From NCBI RefSeq assembly GCF_000315625.1, contig NW_005434411.1, positions 1 through 41,285 of the forward strand: a stretch of DNA of 41,285 nucleotides, in the 5' to 3' direction. The translations under genes were made by a program, and so were the position numbers. Shown here piece after piece: positions 32,669 to 41,285 of this stretch. Numbering within the stretch: position 1 is the first letter of the stretch; every line of letters begins with the position of its first letter. The notes below the pieces were generated by a model. That model was given only the letters and a program-made list of their open reading frames with translations. It made no database searches and was not told the origin of the DNA. Origin of the DNA: Guillardia theta CCMP2712 (taxonomy: Eukaryota > Protista > Cryptophyta).

Positions 32669-35600
32669 ATGTCTTTCAACCTGTCGCAAGCCCTGTGGCT
32701 CCTTGCGCTTGGAGTTGTTGGAGTGCTGTCAGCAGCTGCCTCACTTGACCCCGAGGCGACCATCTACATCACATCCAAACAAGATGCCCCTGCCTCCTCA
32801 AGCAGCCGCAGACTCCTGAGCTCAAGCCAGATTGACTTTGTGCTCTCCCTCACCTTCGACCCGATCCTCGTGGGCTCGTACACGTCCATGAAGCTGCAGG
32901 TCACCAGCATGGTCGACATCCATCAGCTCGACAACATCGCCATCACTCTGCCGGGTCTGCTGGTTGCCTGCTGGAGCCATGGAGCCTCACTGCTATGCAG
33001 GTTTCTCCGTGGACAGCGACGTGCAGCCTGATCCCACAGCGCTGGTGACAAGGTGAGGCAGAGGAGAGGAGATGTGAGCTGATGCTTGCGATAGGGGAGG
33101 GACATTGGGGTGGACGGCTTCTTGGGAAGCGACGCAGCAAGTGATGAAGTTCACTTATGTCATGCCGACAAGCATTCCTGCCCTTCATATCACAAACCTC
33201 TCACTTCCCCTCTCTTCGGGCCTGAGGACTCCACCAGATGGTCCCTGCCCGATCATCACCTGTGACGCATCTGAGATGATGCGACAGGGATGAGCAACTT
33301 CATGGAGAACGTGAAGATCGTCTTCAACTTGCGAGATCTCAACAACTCGCTGCAAGTTTTCAAGAATTTCTCCTTCGTCAAGTTTGCGGGCATTTCGCTC
33401 TCCTTCTCCCCCTGCGGGAGACTTGCTCACAGCATTGCAGCGGGTGAGGCCCGTCACGTGCTTCACTCCTGGTCACTTTATCTTGCCAGGCTGCGCGACC
33501 CTCGACTTGAAAGTGACGATCAACCAGAAGCTGCAGAGCGATGACGTCATCTACCTCCGTCTCTTGGACTTCTCCTCCTCCTCGGGTGACATCATCAACG
33601 GCTCGGTGGTCAGCAAGCGTGCTGGGGCCCCTCTAGGACGATCGTTCTCGCCCATCAGGCGCGCGAGTTGGAGTCAGGTTGTGAGACTGAGGCTGCTGCT
33701 GCTGCTCTCGTTCACTGTTGGCAGTTGGACGGGCTGCTAATGATCCACGTGGACGAGACGATAGTGAGCAATGAGGCGATCGAAGTGTTTGTGCCTTCCA
33801 CGTTCGGCCTCAGGTGATGGAGCTCGCTCCTCTCTGAGATTTCTTGTGACTCAGGCACTCACTTGTACTCGCACCTCCTCCTCCTCCTCCTCCTCCTCCT
33901 CCTCCTCTTCTACTGCTATGTTCCTTCTGCTTCTGCTTCTACTGCTGCTGCTGCTTCTGCTTGTACGTCTTCTACTTCTATGTATATACTCTGCAGGTTT
34001 CCCTTGCAAGGCGTGACGCCAGGCATGTGGCAAGCAAGGCTTGGTCTCTCTGCGTCTTGGGGAAACGTCGGGCTCTTCAACTTCGAGAGTTGCTTGCATG
34101 TGAACCCCCTCCTCCCTCCTCCCTCCTCCCTCCTCCTCCTCCTCCTCCGCCGCCCTCCTCCCTCCGCCCTCCTCCCTCCTCTTCACCCACATCCCTTCAT
34201 CTCTTCGTCCATTCTTGTTTTCTTTCATGCAAGTGAAGTTGAAGACGCAGGTCCCTCGGTCGGTCCTCGAGTTCTCCCGGCCGGTGCTGCGAGAGGACAC
34301 GAGCGTCACGTTTGGCGTCACGTTGAGCTTCGACTTGTACCCGAGCGATGACATCATCCTTGAGCTTCCTCTGCTGCCTCAGCCGCCGCTCAACCAATCC
34401 GTCGACCTCACCGAGTACCTCTCCGTCTTCCATGGCGAGCAGAAGCTCTCCTCGACCTTCTCGGCTCTCTTCTCTCCTTCCAGCTCCCTTGCTCTCCAGG
34501 TGGAGCCCAGCAGAGTCTGTCAGGACGTCAACACCAGCAGCTTCTCGATTGTTCCCTCGGGTCTGCGGTGCTCCGGGTACGAGACGACCTGCTGCGTAAC
34601 CTCCTCGTGGGTCAACGCGACTCAAGGCTCTCGGCTTACCCTGCGCTCTTCTCGCCTCCTCCCTCAGGGTTCTCCGCTTCTCTTCCTTGTCAACCGATCC
34701 TTCCTCCTCCCTCCTGCTCCCATCCCACCCAAGCTCGAGAGCTTCAGTATGGACTTCTCCTCTCAGCTATGGAGCGGACTGCGTCCTCCACCCTTCGGCC
34801 CGTCCTCGGCTGTTCCCGTCGAGGTCTTGCAGTCGGTAGGAGACGCCCCCCTCTTCCACCTGGACTTCGCTCCTCGAGTCGCCTCCTCCTCCTCCTCCCT
34901 CTTCATCCAGGTTAAAACTTCCTCGCTCCTGCTGCCAGGCGAACGTGTCCTCCTCCTCCTCTCAGGCTTTGCAACCAACAGCACATGCGAACTTGACGTC
35001 ACGGCCAACGTTTCCAGCAGCGTCAAGTTGAGGACTGCGAGCTGGTCGTGCACAGACGAGACGCTCTTGTTGGAGTTTGCGGTGCCTGTTGCTGCTGGAA
35101 TTCAGTTGGACGTCAACGTGAGCCGGCTTGAAGAGCTTCGCATCCCTGCCTCTGGCGTGGCGCTAAACAGCCCGGAGCTGCGCCTGAGCGTGCAAGCGAT
35201 GTGCGGGGCTGTGACAGCTCGCGTCGTTCAGTGCGTTGGCGTTGGAGTGGTGGAAAAGTCGGAAGTGACTTTCACCCCCCCGGCTCGAGCTGGGGAGGTG
35301 GCAGGAGTCCAGCTGTCACTGAGCTACCAGTCACCCCTGTCACCGCAAGACGTTGTCATCTTCCGGCTCTTCGGCTTTTCTCTTGCCCCGCAAACCCCCG
35401 GCGACAACTTGACCTGCGTCAACTCGAGTCAGACAGTCGCCAGCGAGTCTGCGCGAGTCGGAGGAGAGGAGAGGAGCCTTGTCCTGCCCGGGTGGTACCT
35501 GACGATGGCGCTTTCAGAGGAAGGAACCGCTCTCCTCCTCCTCCTCAGTCCCAATTCTACCATTCCTGCTCTCGAGCTCATTCAGCTTCAAGTCCCTCTC

Positions 35601-37965
35601 TGTGCTGGGGTGCAGCTGCCGGGGGAGGGAGTGCTTGCAAGCACGAGGATTGAGATGATGATCGACTCGTCGGTGAGGTCAGTCAGCTGGATACCCTCCT
35701 CCTTCCCGCTCATCGGCAAGTGCGACCTGACGATGGACATTCTGTTCCCCTCCGCGGGTCAAGTCTCTCCCCTTGCCTTTCGCTTCTCTTGCTCCATGCC
35801 CATCGCACGGGGGGAAAGCCTCTCAATCCGCCTCCCGTCCTTCTTCCTCCTCAACGTCTCCAACAGTTCTCTCCTAGACTTGACCGCAAACCTGCTCGCG
35901 GGTAACTTCAGCTGGAATATCTCCTGGAGTAGCCCGACCTTGATCATTACTGCCAACCATCTTATCCCTCCCTATCAGCTCGAGTCACTTCTCCTCTCTT
36001 CATCAGCAGGTTATCTTCTTTCTACTAATATTCCCTCCTCCTCCTTCCTCCCTCCGCCCTCCTCCCTCCGCCCTCTTTCCTTCTCCCACACCCTCCTCCT
36101 CTCATTTGCCATGCCCAGGTCTTCATCTTCCGCCTCAAGGCGTGCAGGCACGTTCTCCTCTCCTCACCTTCTCCAGCGACGCACAGGCAGGCGCCATCGC
36201 TGAGACGGGAGGCTGGAGCCCTGGCCTCGGAGCTTTCCTTCTCTCCTACGTAGGGGTATCACCGGCGCGGGCAGGGAGCAACGCGGAGGTGGTGATGCTG
36301 TGGGAACTCAGTGCGGACGTGCTGGAGGGAGAGGACGTTGTGGTTGACCTGCGGGAGATGCTCGGGGGGCAGCTGGTGGGAGAGCTGAGCGTATCAAGCA
36401 AGACAGGAAGTGAAGCTCAAACGCTGCTGGCAGAGTTTGGGATGGAAAATTTGAGGAGCGATGAGAACGTGTTCTTCGACCTGCTCTACCAGAACAACAT
36501 TTCCTTCTTGTCTTCCATCTCCTCCTCCTCCTCCTCCTCCTCCTTTCATGTGACAGCGGTCGATAACAATATCGTACGTCTTACCGCTCAACAACTCATC
36601 GTCGCGAACACAACTGTTCTCCTCTCCCTCTCCTCATCTTCCATCCTCCTTGCAGCCTGCGGACTTCCGACAGGTTTTGATGGATTGTTGTTCCCCGAGG
36701 ACTTTAATCTTCATGACAGGTAGCAAGGTGACGATCGAGTCGAGAGCCTCGCAGGGCCTGGCAGCTCCTCATCTCTTCGCTCACATCATCGCCTTCGGCA
36801 GCTTCGCCATCGCGAGGTTTGACCTTTCCTCTCCCCTCTCCCCTCTCCCCTCTCCTCAACTTTCTAGGCTGACGAGGGTCAAGGATGCTGGTGGAGAGGA
36901 AGGAAGCGGATCCGTTTAACATGCAGAAGCTCAAGCTTGACCTCAAGACGTGCATGGACGTCGAGGTGAACGAACAGCTCGACCTTCTTCTCCCAGGCTT
37001 CCAGCAGCAGGTACACCAGCTGCCAGCTCCTCGTGCCTCACCGTCAGCTCAGGGAGTCTTCAACTTGACCAACAACTACATCTCCTTCTCTTGGGACCCT
37101 TCACAACAGAAGCTCAACGGAATCCTCAAAGTCAAGCTCATGTAATCTTCTCCTTCCTTGTCTCCATCATCCTCAACCTTCTTCCTTCTCTCCTCCCTTC
37201 CTATCCTTTTCCTTTTCATCGTCGTCGTCCTCCCCATCCCCTCTATTATTCTTACCCACCTCTTATTCATCTCTCATCTCTCCCTCCTCTCCCTCGCCTC
37301 GTCCTCCGCTCACTGACTCCACTTCTCACGCCTTCTAGCTCCCACCCTCCCCCCTCCTCCCTCCCCCNNNNNNNNNNNNNNNNNNNNNNNNNNNNNNNNN
37401 NNNNNNNNNNNNNNNNNNNNNNNNNNNNNNNNNNNNNNNNNNNNNNNNNNNNNNNNNNNNNNNNNNNTCCGACCGCCCCACTAACCCTCCCTCCTCCCTC
37501 CCCTCCCCTCCCTTCCTCCCTCCCCCTCCCTTCCTCCCCTCCCCTCCTCCTTCGTTCTTGCCTGACGTAGAGCAGGCAGCATAACCTCCGACAGCAGCAA
37601 CTTGGTCATCTCGACCAACGCGCAGGCAGGACGAGTGCTGGGTGAGGCGAGGGGGAGGAGAGGAGGAGGGAAGGGCTAAGATCGAGCAGGAGAGAGGCTG
37701 GGGCTGTCTGAGCTGCTGCCTGCGGTCTGCGACAACACGTGCGGAGGTTTGCTGGTCTCTCGTCCCCTCGTCTTTCCTCCTCTCAACCCCAACGACCTCC
37801 GGCAACTCCCGCGGTGCTGCCACTCAGTCTCTTACCGCCCTCTCACTCCCCTTCATAGGCCCCCGCCCCTCCCCGCTGGCTGCACGACTATCGCTGAGGC
37901 CAAGCAAGACACGTGCGGCTGCTTGTGACATAGATGAAGTCTCTTACGCCTCGTTCTCCTCCTAG
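32669..37965 (+). CDS. Large secreted protein made of at least 8 divergent beta-rich repeats; spans the assembly gap, 3' end tentative
   Basis: Signal peptide MSFNLSQALWLLALGVVGVLSAAA; recurring unit pattern hxFxPxxAGxxxxhxhxh...hxxxDxhxhxLPGF...SW; 662-codon ORF 34215-36203; flanking GT-AG exons. Confidence 0.75.
37368..37467. other. Assembly gap (100 N) in a pyrimidine-rich intron
   Basis: N run flanked by CT-rich low-complexity sequence. Confidence 0.99.
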
Positions 37966-38009
37966 CCCCTTCAACTTCACCCTCCCGTCTCCCCTCGCAC
38001 TCTTTCCTT

Positions 38010-38930
38010 CTACTTGGAGCCACAGTAGCAGCAATGCGGTAGTGATGAGCATGCGGGGATGGCAGGCATGGTGATGCAATCGACACCACCACAAGCACAA
38101 GCACAAGCACAAGCACAAGCACAAGCACAAGCAGAGCATGAGCAGGGTGGGCCGAGAGGAGCAGGAGGAGTAGGAGGAGGGGCAGAAGCCGGGGTAGAAA
38201 CAGGGGCCTCTAGGAGACCTCCCTTGTCGGTCAACAGCGTGAGGCAACTGGCAAGGCCTATGCCACTCCGCAAGCATTGCGGGGGGTCAGCGTGAGCATC
38301 GTAGAAGAACAAAGCAATGATCATGGTAGAACCAGGCATTGATTATCATAGTGGTGTTGTTGAACATCTCACTGTACAGCGAGTAAGACAAGAAGGACCC
38401 TTCGATGCGGGAGGCAAGCTGCTTCATTTCATGAAAAAGCATCTTTGTTCTTTGTGAGGTTGCATGAGACATGGTCAAAGACCATCAGCCTTGCTGCCAT
38501 CCACACCTGCAGCATCCGTGGCTTGACGTTGAGATCATGGGCACCATAGCTGACTTGAAGGCCGCGAAGGGCTGCTGGAGGGCGAGACGGCAGCGACTTA
38601 GAAGGGAGAGCAAACACTCGAGGTAGATGGATGATGCTTCAATGATCTTGAGCTTCCAATAGTACAAGCAGCTCATGTCGAGCCACCTTGACTCCTTTCA
38701 GCTCCACAGGCTCAACGACAGGATTTGAGAGAAGATCAGCCACAAGCACATTCACGAGCACTTCCTCCCCTCCCCTCCTTCCTCCCCTCCCCCTCGTCCT
38801 CCTCGTCCTCCTCCCTGTCGACGTCGTCGTCCTTCTCCTCCTCCTCCTCTGCCTGACCACTAGATGGATCGTCGGAGGGTTCTCCCGATTTCAGATGTAC
38901 CGGTACTTTACACTTGGATTACCCTGCATG
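38010..38930 (-). CDS. Possible multi-exon hypothetical gene, head-to-head with the eIF4E gene
   Basis: Protein-like segments (EVLVNVLVADLLSNPVVEPVELKGVK, ALRGLQVSYGAHDLNVKPRMLQ, HEMKQLASRIEGSFLSYSLYSEMF) separated by plausible GT-AG introns. Start and stop not resolved. Confidence 0.35.
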
Positions 38931-38952: not shown

Positions 38953-40575
38953 ATGAAGTCAGGAGGGGAGCGGCGACATGCGCTGCGATACGCATACAGG
39001 TGAAGGAGAAGAGGCGAAAATGAAGGGAAGCATGGGGGAGAGAGGCGGGAGAGCGAGAGCAGGAAAAGACAATGAGAGCGGGGGCGAAGAGGAGGAGGGG
39101 AAGAGGGAGGAGGTGGAGGAGGAGAGCTGGTGTGTGGGCTGGAGAGAGTCATCAGAAGGTTGCTGATCAAGGAGTGGATAGGTTTCATTTCCTGCAAGAC
39201 AACGAGGACGAAGAAGGTCACATCCACGACAAGACTGCTGACGACTTGACCTCCACCGGAAGTTTCGACAGCGTGGAGGCCTTCTGGTCCTACTTCCATC
39301 ACCTCGTCCGCCCCTCGGATCTGCCCAACAAGCACGACTGGTGCATGTTCAAGTGTGGGATCCTGCCGTTCAGTCACCACCCAGACAATGTGGGAGGAGG
39401 GAAATGGACGGTGAGAATGAGTGGAAGAGGAGAGAGGAGGTTGACGATGCGTTGAAGCTGAGGCTCAAGAAGACCCTCAACATCAACAGAGTGTGGGAAG
39501 ATATCATGCTCGGAGTGCTTGGAGGAGTAGACAACGTCGATGAGTACATGTGAGATGAAAGATGGAGATTGGGGAGTAGAGGGTGTGGGAGAGGCGGAGC
39601 GAGGGAGAGGGAAAAAGGGGGGGGCGGGGAAGGAGGGAGAAAGGGAGGAGGAGGGAGAAGACGGAGGTGCAAAGTTGATCCTGCAAACAGAAATGGAGTA
39701 GTGATCTCATCAAGGCATGATGAAGACATTATCTCGGTGTGGACCAACCACAGGTGAAGCAGCCGCTAGCTTCTCTTTGCTCCGATGACTCTGAATGTGT
39801 CTTGACGGGCAAACAACAGAAATCGCGGGAAAACCATTCACATTCGACTAGTGCTCATGAGGCTGTTGGCATACACCAAACAGGTGCTTGCAGCCTGCTT
39901 GTCTTGTCTCTCTCCATCTGACGCTGCTTGTCTTGTTGTCTCTCTTCGTCTGACGTCGCCCCGTCGCTCACTCACAGACTTGGGAGTTCAAGAGGTTTTC
40001 ACACGTGAACGGGACGACGGAGACCCTGAGATACTCCTTGGCTGACCTACAGCAAGTTCGTTCTTCTCCTCCTCACTCCCTCTTCCCCTCCCCCCTTTGC
40101 TCCGATCTCCATCTCCGCCCCGTGTCTTTCCCCTTGTGCCCCTTCCATCCACTCCACTTGTCTTGCATCTCCTCGTGCTCGCTGACTCTCCTCAAACACT
40201 CACGTCTGCTTCTGCTTCTCTCCCCTCACCTTGATCGTTACAGTTGAACTCTCCCGCTCGTGACCCTCCCATCTACGTGTGGGAGAGCTACGAGGTCTAC
40301 CAGGAGCTCAAGATCGGTAGACTCCTCCTGCTCCTGCTCCTTCCTTCGCCTACTCAACTGTCCTCTTCCCCATCTCGCAGATTCGCTACAGGGCACAGAT
40401 TGACCTGGAAGCAGGTGCACAGGGAAGAGACCGTAGGAGAGTGGAGGATCAGGAAGACTCGAAGAACGGGGATGGAGGGCGAGGGATGAGAGAAGAGGAG
40501 GACGAAGAAGAGAATGCGGCGACGGGAAACGTGTCCATGTCGATGAAGGCGCAAGAGAAGGAAACGAAGACCTGA
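38953..40575 (+). CDS. Divergent eIF4E-family protein, class II (4EHP/nCBP)-like, with a C-terminal extension; stop at 40403 or 40575 depending on the last splice
   Basis: MKSGGERRHALRYAYR|FHFLQ (intron 39000-39181; cf. HPLQYNYTFWY), FDSVEAFWSYFHHLVRPSDLP, MFKCGILP...NVGGGKWT|LRLKK...RVWEDIMLGVLG, NGVVISSRHDEDIISVWT. Confidence 0.9.
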
Positions 40576-41187
40576 TTGAATGGCTCGCATGAAAGCAATG
40601 AGCTCGAGGGAAGGGAAACAGAGTTGGGGAGCAGGGGGGGATTAAACTTGTTCATATCTACAAATCGAGTCGATCAGGAGCTTCTGAGCAGGCGATCTTC
40701 CAAGCTGAGGTGAGCAGGTCAGTGCTGGAGTTGAGCTGAGGAGGGTGACCTGTAGTATTCGGCGAGGAGGCGGTAGATGTAGGAGGGGTTGTGACCTCCT
40801 GCGTTGGTGATGAAGAGAGAAACTAACTCTGAGCAAACGTGAGCCGAATACCTCATGCTGAACCTCACGACCCATCATGTCATGTCATGTCATGTCACCG
40901 TTCAAACCTCACCACGTACATCAGATCACCTTATACCATTTTTCCTGTACCACATAGAGCACATCTCGCTTCCTCGCATTGTATCAAATCACTTCATCTC
41001 AACCAGCAACTACACAAAGCAGAGGCATATCATCTCTGATCGTATCCTACCCATCCTCCCTCATCCTTCACCTCCTCTCTCCCCATCACTGGCATCAACA
41101 TCACCGGGAGGAACATAGTCTGAGGTAGGATTTAACACCCTCACGATCCGCGGAATCGCCTCGTCCCCTGTTAACCCGTCAAAACTC

Positions 41188-41225
<38 letters not shown>

Positions 41226-41285
41226 CCACCCCCTCCCCTCCCCCTCCCCTCCTCCGCCCCTCCCCTCCCCTCCCTTCCCCTTCCA
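41188..41285 (+). repeat. (CA)n followed by a (CCCCT)n-like tract at the window end
   Basis: Directly visible. Confidence 0.9.

Follow-up and report, generated by a model that had tools for sequence, protein, structure and literature searches.

An eIF4E-family clade in Guillardia theta and uncultured eukaryotes that lacks the stacking residues of the m7G cap slot and may act independently of the cap

Background

Can a protein of the eIF4E family be maintained once both residues that stack the m7G cap have been replaced, and what might such a protein then do? This question is raised by a locus in the nuclear DNA of Guillardia theta CCMP2712 (contig C263), for which the sole database model is "hypothetical protein GUITHDRAFT_51700, partial". 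The window analysed here is the whole stretch of 41,285 nucleotides that holds the locus, and all nucleotide positions refer to it. W102, E103, and W166 were identical in all members classified by Joshi et al. 2005 (PMC1260017), Glu103 has been termed non-variable in all eukaryotes studied (PMC11791286), and Jagus et al. 2012 described W102/E103 as universally conserved, treating for G. theta the nucleomorph eIF4E alone. In the literature that we searched, coverage of which is incomplete, we found no published description of the clade reported here.

An earlier, sequence-only reading of the window had proposed an eIF4E paralogue that has lost the cap-binding sandwich and kept the partner-binding face. 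Here, we combine profile and homology searches, phylogenetic trees, a comparison with a close metagenomic relative, and a structure model of an orthologue. Our main reading, to which we assign a probability of roughly 0.55, is that the locus encodes a cap-independent, 4EHP-derived adaptor or decoy of the eIF4E fold that would have given up the canonical m7G clamp. Of its two parts, the loss of canonical cap binding appears quite likely from the residues present, while an adaptor or decoy role is one that we would give about an even chance.

Results and discussion

Family membership and gene structure

The claim that the locus encodes a real member of the eIF4E family, with a spliced frame that stays unbroken, held up well. 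The Pfam IF4E profile (PF01652; curated cut-off 28.7 bits) matched exon 2 alone with 53.4 bits (E 3.2e-14), the open frame at the locus with 57.9 bits, and the GUITHDRAFT_51700 locus with 56.3 bits in a scan of its own genome (an 87-Mb assembly of 669 contigs), and exon 1 joins exon 2 in frame via a GT..AG intron (Table 1). The profile scan of the G. theta contigs found six eIF4E-family loci, two of them of a type without W102, and Trp102 is retained at the remaining four (on C8, C117, C45, and C142), of which the C8 locus is a canonical eIF4E. Among the open frames nearby, at 33.8-37.8 kb, none matched a Pfam profile, and a word-index protein search with the exon 2 region matched its own locus and one near-identical metagenomic copy only.

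Several hallmarks of the family are present. The dorsal (S/T)VxxFW motif reads SVEAFW at 39270-39287, with Val69 and Trp73; Trp166 and Arg157 are found in SSRHDEDIISVW of exon 4; and the cupped-hand alpha/beta fold is predicted for the orthologue P0003, which is 59% identical in exon 2. The hallmarks of the cap slot are missing, with Thr and Ser instead of the aromatic pair W56/W102 around m7G, and with His instead of Glu103 both in this gene and in the metagenomic contig L011 (ENA ERZ930064).

Homology searches run exon by exon gave seven exons, all bounded by GT..AG, whose alignments run one after another along residues 17-226 of P0003, an intronless gene, with single-residue gaps in that alignment filled by split codons; the seven are likewise colinear with the intronless P0008. 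Judged from the sequence, the predicted gene would most likely comprise about 202 codons in seven to eight exons, the short ending at 40403 being the likeliest. After the second intron, the NCBI model inserts 16 residues (GGGGRRRRCKVDPANR) that are absent from every homologue and that we take for an annotation error. P0003 and P0008 run on into RGG-rich tails ending SLWD, and the GUITHDRAFT_51700 gene is probably without such a tail. A candidate Arg/Gly-rich tail in frame 0 at 40447-40591 (ending EDLIEWLA) was rejected, its comparison with the P0003 tail being non-significant and its acceptor having no pyrimidine tract.

Table 1. Exons and introns of the predicted gene, with their content and alignments
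Feature	Positions	Strand	Content	Alignment and comparison
Exon 1	38953..38999	+	ATG, MKSGGERRHALRYAY, 2 bases of a split Arg codon; His37 equivalent, W43->Tyr, beginning of strand 1	P0003 residues 17-24; P0008 residues 12-20
Intron 1	39000..39181	+	GT..AG, 182 nt, purine-rich simple sequence; frame restored across it	4 substitutions within the part covered by L011
Exon 2	39182..39410	+	FHFLQDNEDEEGHIHDKTADDL...GILPFSHHPDNVGGGKWT; full translation FHFLQDNEDEEGHIHDKTADDLTSTGSFDSVEAFWSYFHHLVRPSDLPNKHDWCMFKCGILPFSHHPDNVGGGKWT; acidic S1-S2 loop, Thr at W56, SVEAFW, D90, W102->Ser, E103->His, K112/W113	Pfam IF4E; ungapped 4EHP alignment; 59% identity to P0003 across all 76 residues
Intron 2	39411..39457	+	GT..AG, 47 nt; in-frame stop at 39453-39455	Same junction in NCBI model P0002; splice dinucleotides unaltered in L011
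Exon 3	39458..39549	+	LRLKKTLNINRVWEDIMLGVLGGVDNVDEY + 2 bases; W130, dorsal helix with Leu135 and Gly139	P0003 residues 102-129
Exon 4	39691..39753	+	(I)NGVVISSRHDEDIISVWTNH; R157 (39713-39715), K159->Asp, K162->Ile (39728-39730), W166 (39740-39742)	4EHP GAVVSVRFQEDIISIWN; P0003 residues 132-151
Exon 5	39820..39883	+	(R)NRGKTIHIRLVLMRLLAYTKQ, final core helix	Colinear with P0003 residues 153-168; one synonymous change in L011
Exon 6	39978..40055	+	TWEFKRFSHVNGTTETLRYSLADLQQ; last strand (EFKR), C-terminal extension begins	EFKRY of P0003; EYKRH...LQYSVTTLK of P0008
Exon 7	40244..40316	+	LNSPARDPPIYVWESYEVYQELKI + 1 base; clade-specific P-P-x-Y-x-W-E motif	P0003 KEPPLYVWESLEAAGELR, E 2e-7 (BLASTP)
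Putative last exon	40381..40403	+	(D)SLQGTD then TGA, from sequence reading; acceptor cag 40378-40380 behind a long pyrimidine tract; protein end ...KIDSLQGTD	

Residues of the cap slot

When exon 2 was compared by phmmer with all PDB sequences, the best match was human 4EHP (eIF4E2; E 1.8e-10), in an ungapped alignment that sets GIKPMWEDDANKNGGKW of 4EHP against GILPFSHHPDNVGGGKW of this gene. The W102 position is occupied by Ser (codon 39372-39374) and the E103 position by His (codon 39375-39377). At the W56 position, which is Tyr in 4EHP, the protein has Thr (codon 39234-39236), 17 residues ahead of the kept W73 (39285-39287), and the closest flanking residues are His, with no ring of the Trp/Tyr/Phe type; all three replacements are those that had been proposed before. 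V69, W73, D90, R157, and W166 are retained. In a 126-sequence alignment of the eIF4E family, 97% of the rows outside the clade described below have W at the W102 column, 98% have E at E103, and 95% have Y/W/F at W56, so the departure is far from chance variation.

We considered whether these assignments could be an artefact of alignment, with the true stacking residues lying elsewhere in the sequence. Some room for this is left by the HMMER alignment to 4EHP, which begins at query residue 21 and leaves three residues around the W56 column unaligned. However, the W102/E103 assignment needs no gap and lies between the invariant motifs G-x-x-P and GGKW, and the stretch of the translated sequence from strand 1 to the SVEAFW helix is free of Trp, Tyr, and Phe. 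Misalignment is thus largely excluded, and we regard it as barely credible.

Position K162 had also been counted among the losses. The residue is indeed Ile (4EHP GAVVSVRFQEDIISIWN vs GVVISSRHDEDIISVWT in this gene), but its status as an added loss does not survive comparison, since Ile162 and the acidic "EDII" stretch are ordinary in class II, as in 4EHP, and the 2024 reclassification defines class II by the change of K/R162 to Ile/Val/Leu (PMC11791286). Because 4EHP reads likewise here, the state of K159/K162 is the class II norm and no special loss.

Predicted fold and affinity to class II

An AlphaFold2 model was built for the orthologue P0003 with the 126-row alignment. Its pLDDT exceeds 90 over residues 11-185, with a weaker S1-S2 loop, and lies below 50 over residues 188-311, which include the clade-specific C-terminal extension; docking of this extension on the core was considered and is unsupported at such pLDDT values. 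The P0003 model has low confidence in the loop where a His or Phe precedes the W56 column by 4-5 residues, and this loop could rearrange; Phe101, His103, and His104 of the G. theta protein sit in a loop.

Foldseek searches with the P0003 model returned human 4EHP for all of the top 12 matches (TM 0.88-0.91 by target, 38-40% identity), so that this orthologue is predicted to take the 4EHP fold, and the nearest cluster in the protein atlas is "eIF4E type 2". Of the residue changes that characterize class II (Joshi et al. 2005, as amended in 2024), the protein has Tyr for W43 (class II: Tyr/Phe/Leu), found in RYAYRF in register with P0003/P0008 and canonical rows, and Ile for K/R162 (Ile/Val/Leu), and it departs at W56 (Tyr/Phe), where it has Thr. 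The fold match, the atlas cluster, Tyr43, and Ile162 together make a class II (4EHP-like) origin of the protein likely.

A clade without W102

A HMMER search with exon 2 yielded 547 eIF4E-family proteins. The best matches (P0003/P0151, P0008, P0006, P0010, P0012/P0166, P0004/P0005, P0022, P0101, and P0007) carry S, P, I, or C at the W102 column, never Trp, and T, S, or A at the W56 column, the exception there being the fragment P0022 with Phe. P0007 is the second G. theta paralogue (GUITHDRAFT_145647, contig C107), which reads GIKPFPDDPANMGGGKW. The leader annotated for this paralogue (MQLLIPFPLL...) has the look of a read-through intron. In a maximum-likelihood tree of 110 rows, 11 W102-less proteins including P0007 form one group (SH-aLRT 98, stem 0.82), and the clade received a support of 95 when the set was cut to 77 rows, in a tree where each branch carries a single support value; the tree alignment had 238 columns, the three trait columns included. 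The protein is thus no one-off paralogue, as a second G. theta gene and environmental proteins share the loss in one clade (98 and 95).

By this distribution, the loss of W56/W102 would be ancestral to the clade. P0014 and P0123, which also lack W102, branch outside it on the 110-row tree and would be independent losses of W102, and the W102-less P0027 (R,H) was left out of the tree. Support for the branch that links the clade to class II-like rows ranges from 22 to 89 across trees.

Regarding the organisms, the contig of P0003 also holds a TIP49 gene, and because this gene is 88% identical to TIP49 of G. theta, the organism is probably a cryptophyte. Further members come from marine contigs of TARA Oceans (GC 63-66%) and from freshwater contigs of JGI (GC 47-49%), and since the genes next to these marine and freshwater members are only weakly similar to those of G. 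theta, the clade may extend beyond cryptophytes. A search started from a UBX protein encoded next to a clade member matched metagenomic proteins only.

In the 126-row alignment, the clade keeps His37, Val69, Glu70, Trp73, Tyr/Phe76, His78, Trp113, Trp130, Leu135, Gly139, Arg157, and Trp166, to which reading of the sequences adds Asp90; these residues span the structural core and the dorsal docking surface for YxxxxL-hydrophobic motifs. For the G. theta protein, alignments to 4EHP, to P0003/P0008, and to the family bear out that the partner-binding face is kept ((S/T)VxxFW, His37, Leu135, and Gly139 are present), and R157 and W166 are kept as well, their codons lying in exon 4 (Table 1). The changes in the clade comprise W43 (to Tyr/Phe), W46 (to His/Phe/Tyr), W56 and W102, both replaced, and in part E103; the K162 column has I/V. 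His at the E103 column occurs solely here and in L011, with Gly in one member and Asp/Glu elsewhere, so the proposed loss of E103 applies to this gene and its close relative and does not extend to most clade members. Positions 56 (T/S/A), 101 (F/D/L), and 102 (S/P/I/C) vary within the clade, a pattern that fits relaxed constraint better than a newly conserved contact.

In the clade, the S1-S2 loop that covers the cap slot bears a conserved acidic motif, D-E-[ED]-G-[HF]. Where the N-terminus of a member is sound, this loop carries a net charge of -5 to -8 (about -7 here); other eIF4E-family members average +0.6 (sd 1.8). All full-length clade members have in common a C-terminal extension, P-P/x-x-Y-x-W-E, which in this protein is DPPIYVWESYEVYQELK and matches that of P0003 (E 2e-7).

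Purifying selection on the gene

The metagenomic contig L011 is 96% identical to the window over 39091-40154. Exon bases differ at 10/526, against roughly 7% of positions plus several indels in non-exon sequence. Seven of the exon changes are synonymous and three non-synonymous (dS 0.066, dN 0.0074, dN/dS 0.11, binomial p 0.0013, from this one relative), the splice dinucleotides are all the same, and the Ser-His-His stretch is identical. The gene is maintained under purifying selection and shows none of the marks of a pseudogene that were looked for, be it a broken frame, the loss of splice sites, or a dN/dS near 1. Neutral evolution, which had been named as evidence that would speak against the earlier proposal, was thus not seen.

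A decaying or unexpressed paralogue, that is, a young pseudogene whose frame is still open by chance, would account for the missing key catalytic-type residues and for a sole database model that is partial and partly wrong. Yet besides the dN/dS and the count of synonymous changes, exons are 3-4x better conserved than introns, splice sites are all intact in both genomes, and the same losses recur across a deep clade whose branches are long and whose fold residues are conserved. Moreover, the second G. theta paralogue is 38% identical only (first BLAST segment of exon 2), which suggests that the W102-less family is old. The pseudogene reading is therefore largely refuted and, in our estimate, very improbable.

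Comparison with known eIF4Es

Class II proteins (4EHP/eIF4E2 and plant nCBP) are the best match both by sequence and by structure, and the resemblance includes W43->Tyr, K162->Ile, the size of the core, the "R-x-x-E-D-I-I-S-x-W" strand, the "W-E-x-x-x-L" dorsal helix, and the RLxKG stretch. Whereas class II keeps Tyr/Phe at 56 together with Trp102 and Glu103, this protein has Thr, Ser, and His; unlike class II, it also has His at W46, its S1-S2 loop carries a net charge of about -7 where that of 4EHP is basic, and the PPxYxWE C-terminal extension is extra.

Among proteins studied by experiment, LeishIF4E-6 (W56Y, W102F) shows no binding to m7GTP, yet it does bind an eIF4G, and its overexpression reduces translation (PMC8657474). 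Like the G. theta protein, it is a paralogue of eIF4E in which neither stacking Trp remains (PMC8657474), but its replacements are still aromatic (Tyr, Phe), Glu103 is kept, and it belongs to trypanosomatid group 3, with no relationship to this clade on the evidence here. By analogy, LeishIF4E-6 is the nearest experimental precedent for a cap-blind, partner-binding eIF4E. At W102 itself, a single reported exception is Amphidinium carterae eIF4E-3b with Arg (bioRxiv 10.1101/2024.02.20.581179), which shares with this protein a non-aromatic residue at that position and differs in keeping Glu103 and an aromatic residue at W56, as a member of dinoflagellate clade 3. P0014, P0123, and P0027 resemble eIF4E-3b in lacking W102, and P0027 (R,H) has the same Arg at this column. 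Metazoan eIF4E3 (class III) is similar in its non-aromatic Cys at W56; in contrast, it binds the cap and has W43, W102, and E103 in place.

We give even odds to the view that the clade constitutes a new eIF4E class in cryptophytes and uncultured freshwater and marine eukaryotes, one whose ancestor would have abandoned the m7G clamp, with an acidic lid over the slot, kept the dorsal face, and gained PPxYxWE. By the 2024 criterion, which looks to non-conservative changes among the cap-contact residues, it would rank as a new class. If true, the invariance reported for W102/E103 would be broken for the first time by a conserved clade, whose members would be naturally evolved cap-independent adaptors of the eIF4E fold. 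A maintained clade with neither stacking residue and with a variable E103 would indicate that the fold has been reused beyond cap binding, and its members would be natural "separation-of-function" proteins, with the cap slot lost and the partner face retained. Cryptophytes may suit studies of how translational control diversifies, since two of the six eIF4E-family loci in G. theta are of the W102-less type.

Proposed function

How might such a protein work? With no aromatic residue on either side of the slot and a loop charge of about -7, m7GpppN would not be held in the canonical way, and the acidic S1-S2 loop would be expected to repel the triphosphate and RNA. The dorsal surface would still be offered to proteins with a YxxxxL-hydrophobic motif (eIF4G, 4E-BP-like, or GIGYF-like), as the residues for dorsal docking are retained (His37, Val69, Glu70, Trp73, the Tyr76 equivalent, Leu135, and Gly139), along with the Asp90-Arg157 pair and Trp166. 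Because the aromatic clamp of the cap slot is lost while this docking face is kept, the protein could serve in translational control as a cap-independent adaptor or as a competitor (decoy), and the PPxYxWE extension might provide a second, clade-specific contact site.

The main rival to this reading is that the slot has been remodelled and still binds the cap, another nucleotide, or another ligand, which would make the protein a specialised rather than a blind eIF4E. Candidate contacts are His103/His104 or Phe101 in this protein, and Trp166, Arg157, and an acidic residue at 103/104 in the clade. Odd cap pockets can still bind, if mouse eIF4E3 is taken as an analogue, which binds the cap with one stacking Trp (PMC1260017), and the S1-S2 loop is flexible in the P0003 model. 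Most of the clade also conserves W166, R157, D90, and an acidic side chain at 103/104, and with Glu/Asp at 103, R157, and W166 in most members, the slot may still hold some ligand. Against this, residues 56, 101, and 102 vary within the clade in a manner that points to relaxed constraint rather than to a new contact, the strongly acidic loop speaks against ligands that bear phosphate, and LeishIF4E-6 loses binding despite its aromatic substitutions (PMC8657474). We therefore hold a remodelled slot to be unlikely, if still a reading of some weight, and continue to prefer a cap-independent adaptor or decoy.

As for possible partners, candidates for eIF4G are the MIF4G loci on C8, C12, C25, and C116, and the GYF-domain protein is encoded on C169. 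A 4E-T profile had no match in the G. theta genome, where positive controls gave none either, and the stretches examined near G. theta MIF4G loci held no convincing YxxxxL-hydrophobic motif. Profile searches of the genome found one GYF-domain locus and several MIF4G loci.

Gene model and orthologues

The NCBI model of the eIF4E-like gene, GUITHDRAFT_51700, is cut off at its 5' and 3' ends alike and contains a 16-residue piece that is missing in all homologues (see table); a model colinear with the orthologues was obtained using donor 39550 and acceptor 39690. The metagenomic orthologues P0003 and P0008 carry long Gly/Arg (RGG) tails that both finish with the C-terminal sequence SLWD, and this RGG tail is probably absent from the G. 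theta gene.

Coordinates of the features discussed
Feature	Location	Description
Extra piece in GUITHDRAFT_51700	window 39643-39690	16 residues, GGGGRRRRCKVDPANR
GUITHDRAFT_145647 (P0007; L006)	G000 contig C107, ~153.2-154.0 kb	second G. theta eIF4E-like gene
P0003	contig L012, 2309-3244	intronless on its contig
P0008	contig L015, 359-1252	intronless on its contig
Open frame	window 34215-36203 (+)	662 codons; Ser/Leu/Pro-rich, repetitive-looking
Long dinucleotide and simple repeats	window 37850-38300 and 41190-41285	on either side of the gene
(CA)n/(TG)n repeats	window ~38060-38130 and 41195-41222	
CT-rich runs	window 38750-38860	

Other W102-less proteins and G. theta paralogues

The stacking residues are also gone from GUITHDRAFT_145647 (W56 is Ala, W102 Pro and E103 Asp, human numbering); MQLLIPFPLLRVPSSLW, which the annotation gives as its N-terminus, seems to stem from intron read-through and not to be a leader peptide. 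The canonical-looking eIF4E paralogue L001 (G000 contig C117) reads PMWETFPHGGAW and keeps Trp102 and Glu103, with a 16-residue insertion separating the W73 helix from the W102 loop. Three independent eIF4E-family matches of the exon 2 HMMER search lack Trp at the W102 column, where P0014 has Phe+Ser, P0027 Arg+His and P0123 Ala+Glu. P0014 and P0123 fall outside the W102-less clade in the tree, among whose rows P0027 was not included; P0027 is reminiscent of the published dinoflagellate eIF4E-3b.

Surroundings of the gene

No Pfam match was obtained for the 662-codon open frame, and no family match for the adjoining open frames at 33.8-37.8 kb of the window. Long repeats lie on both sides of the gene.
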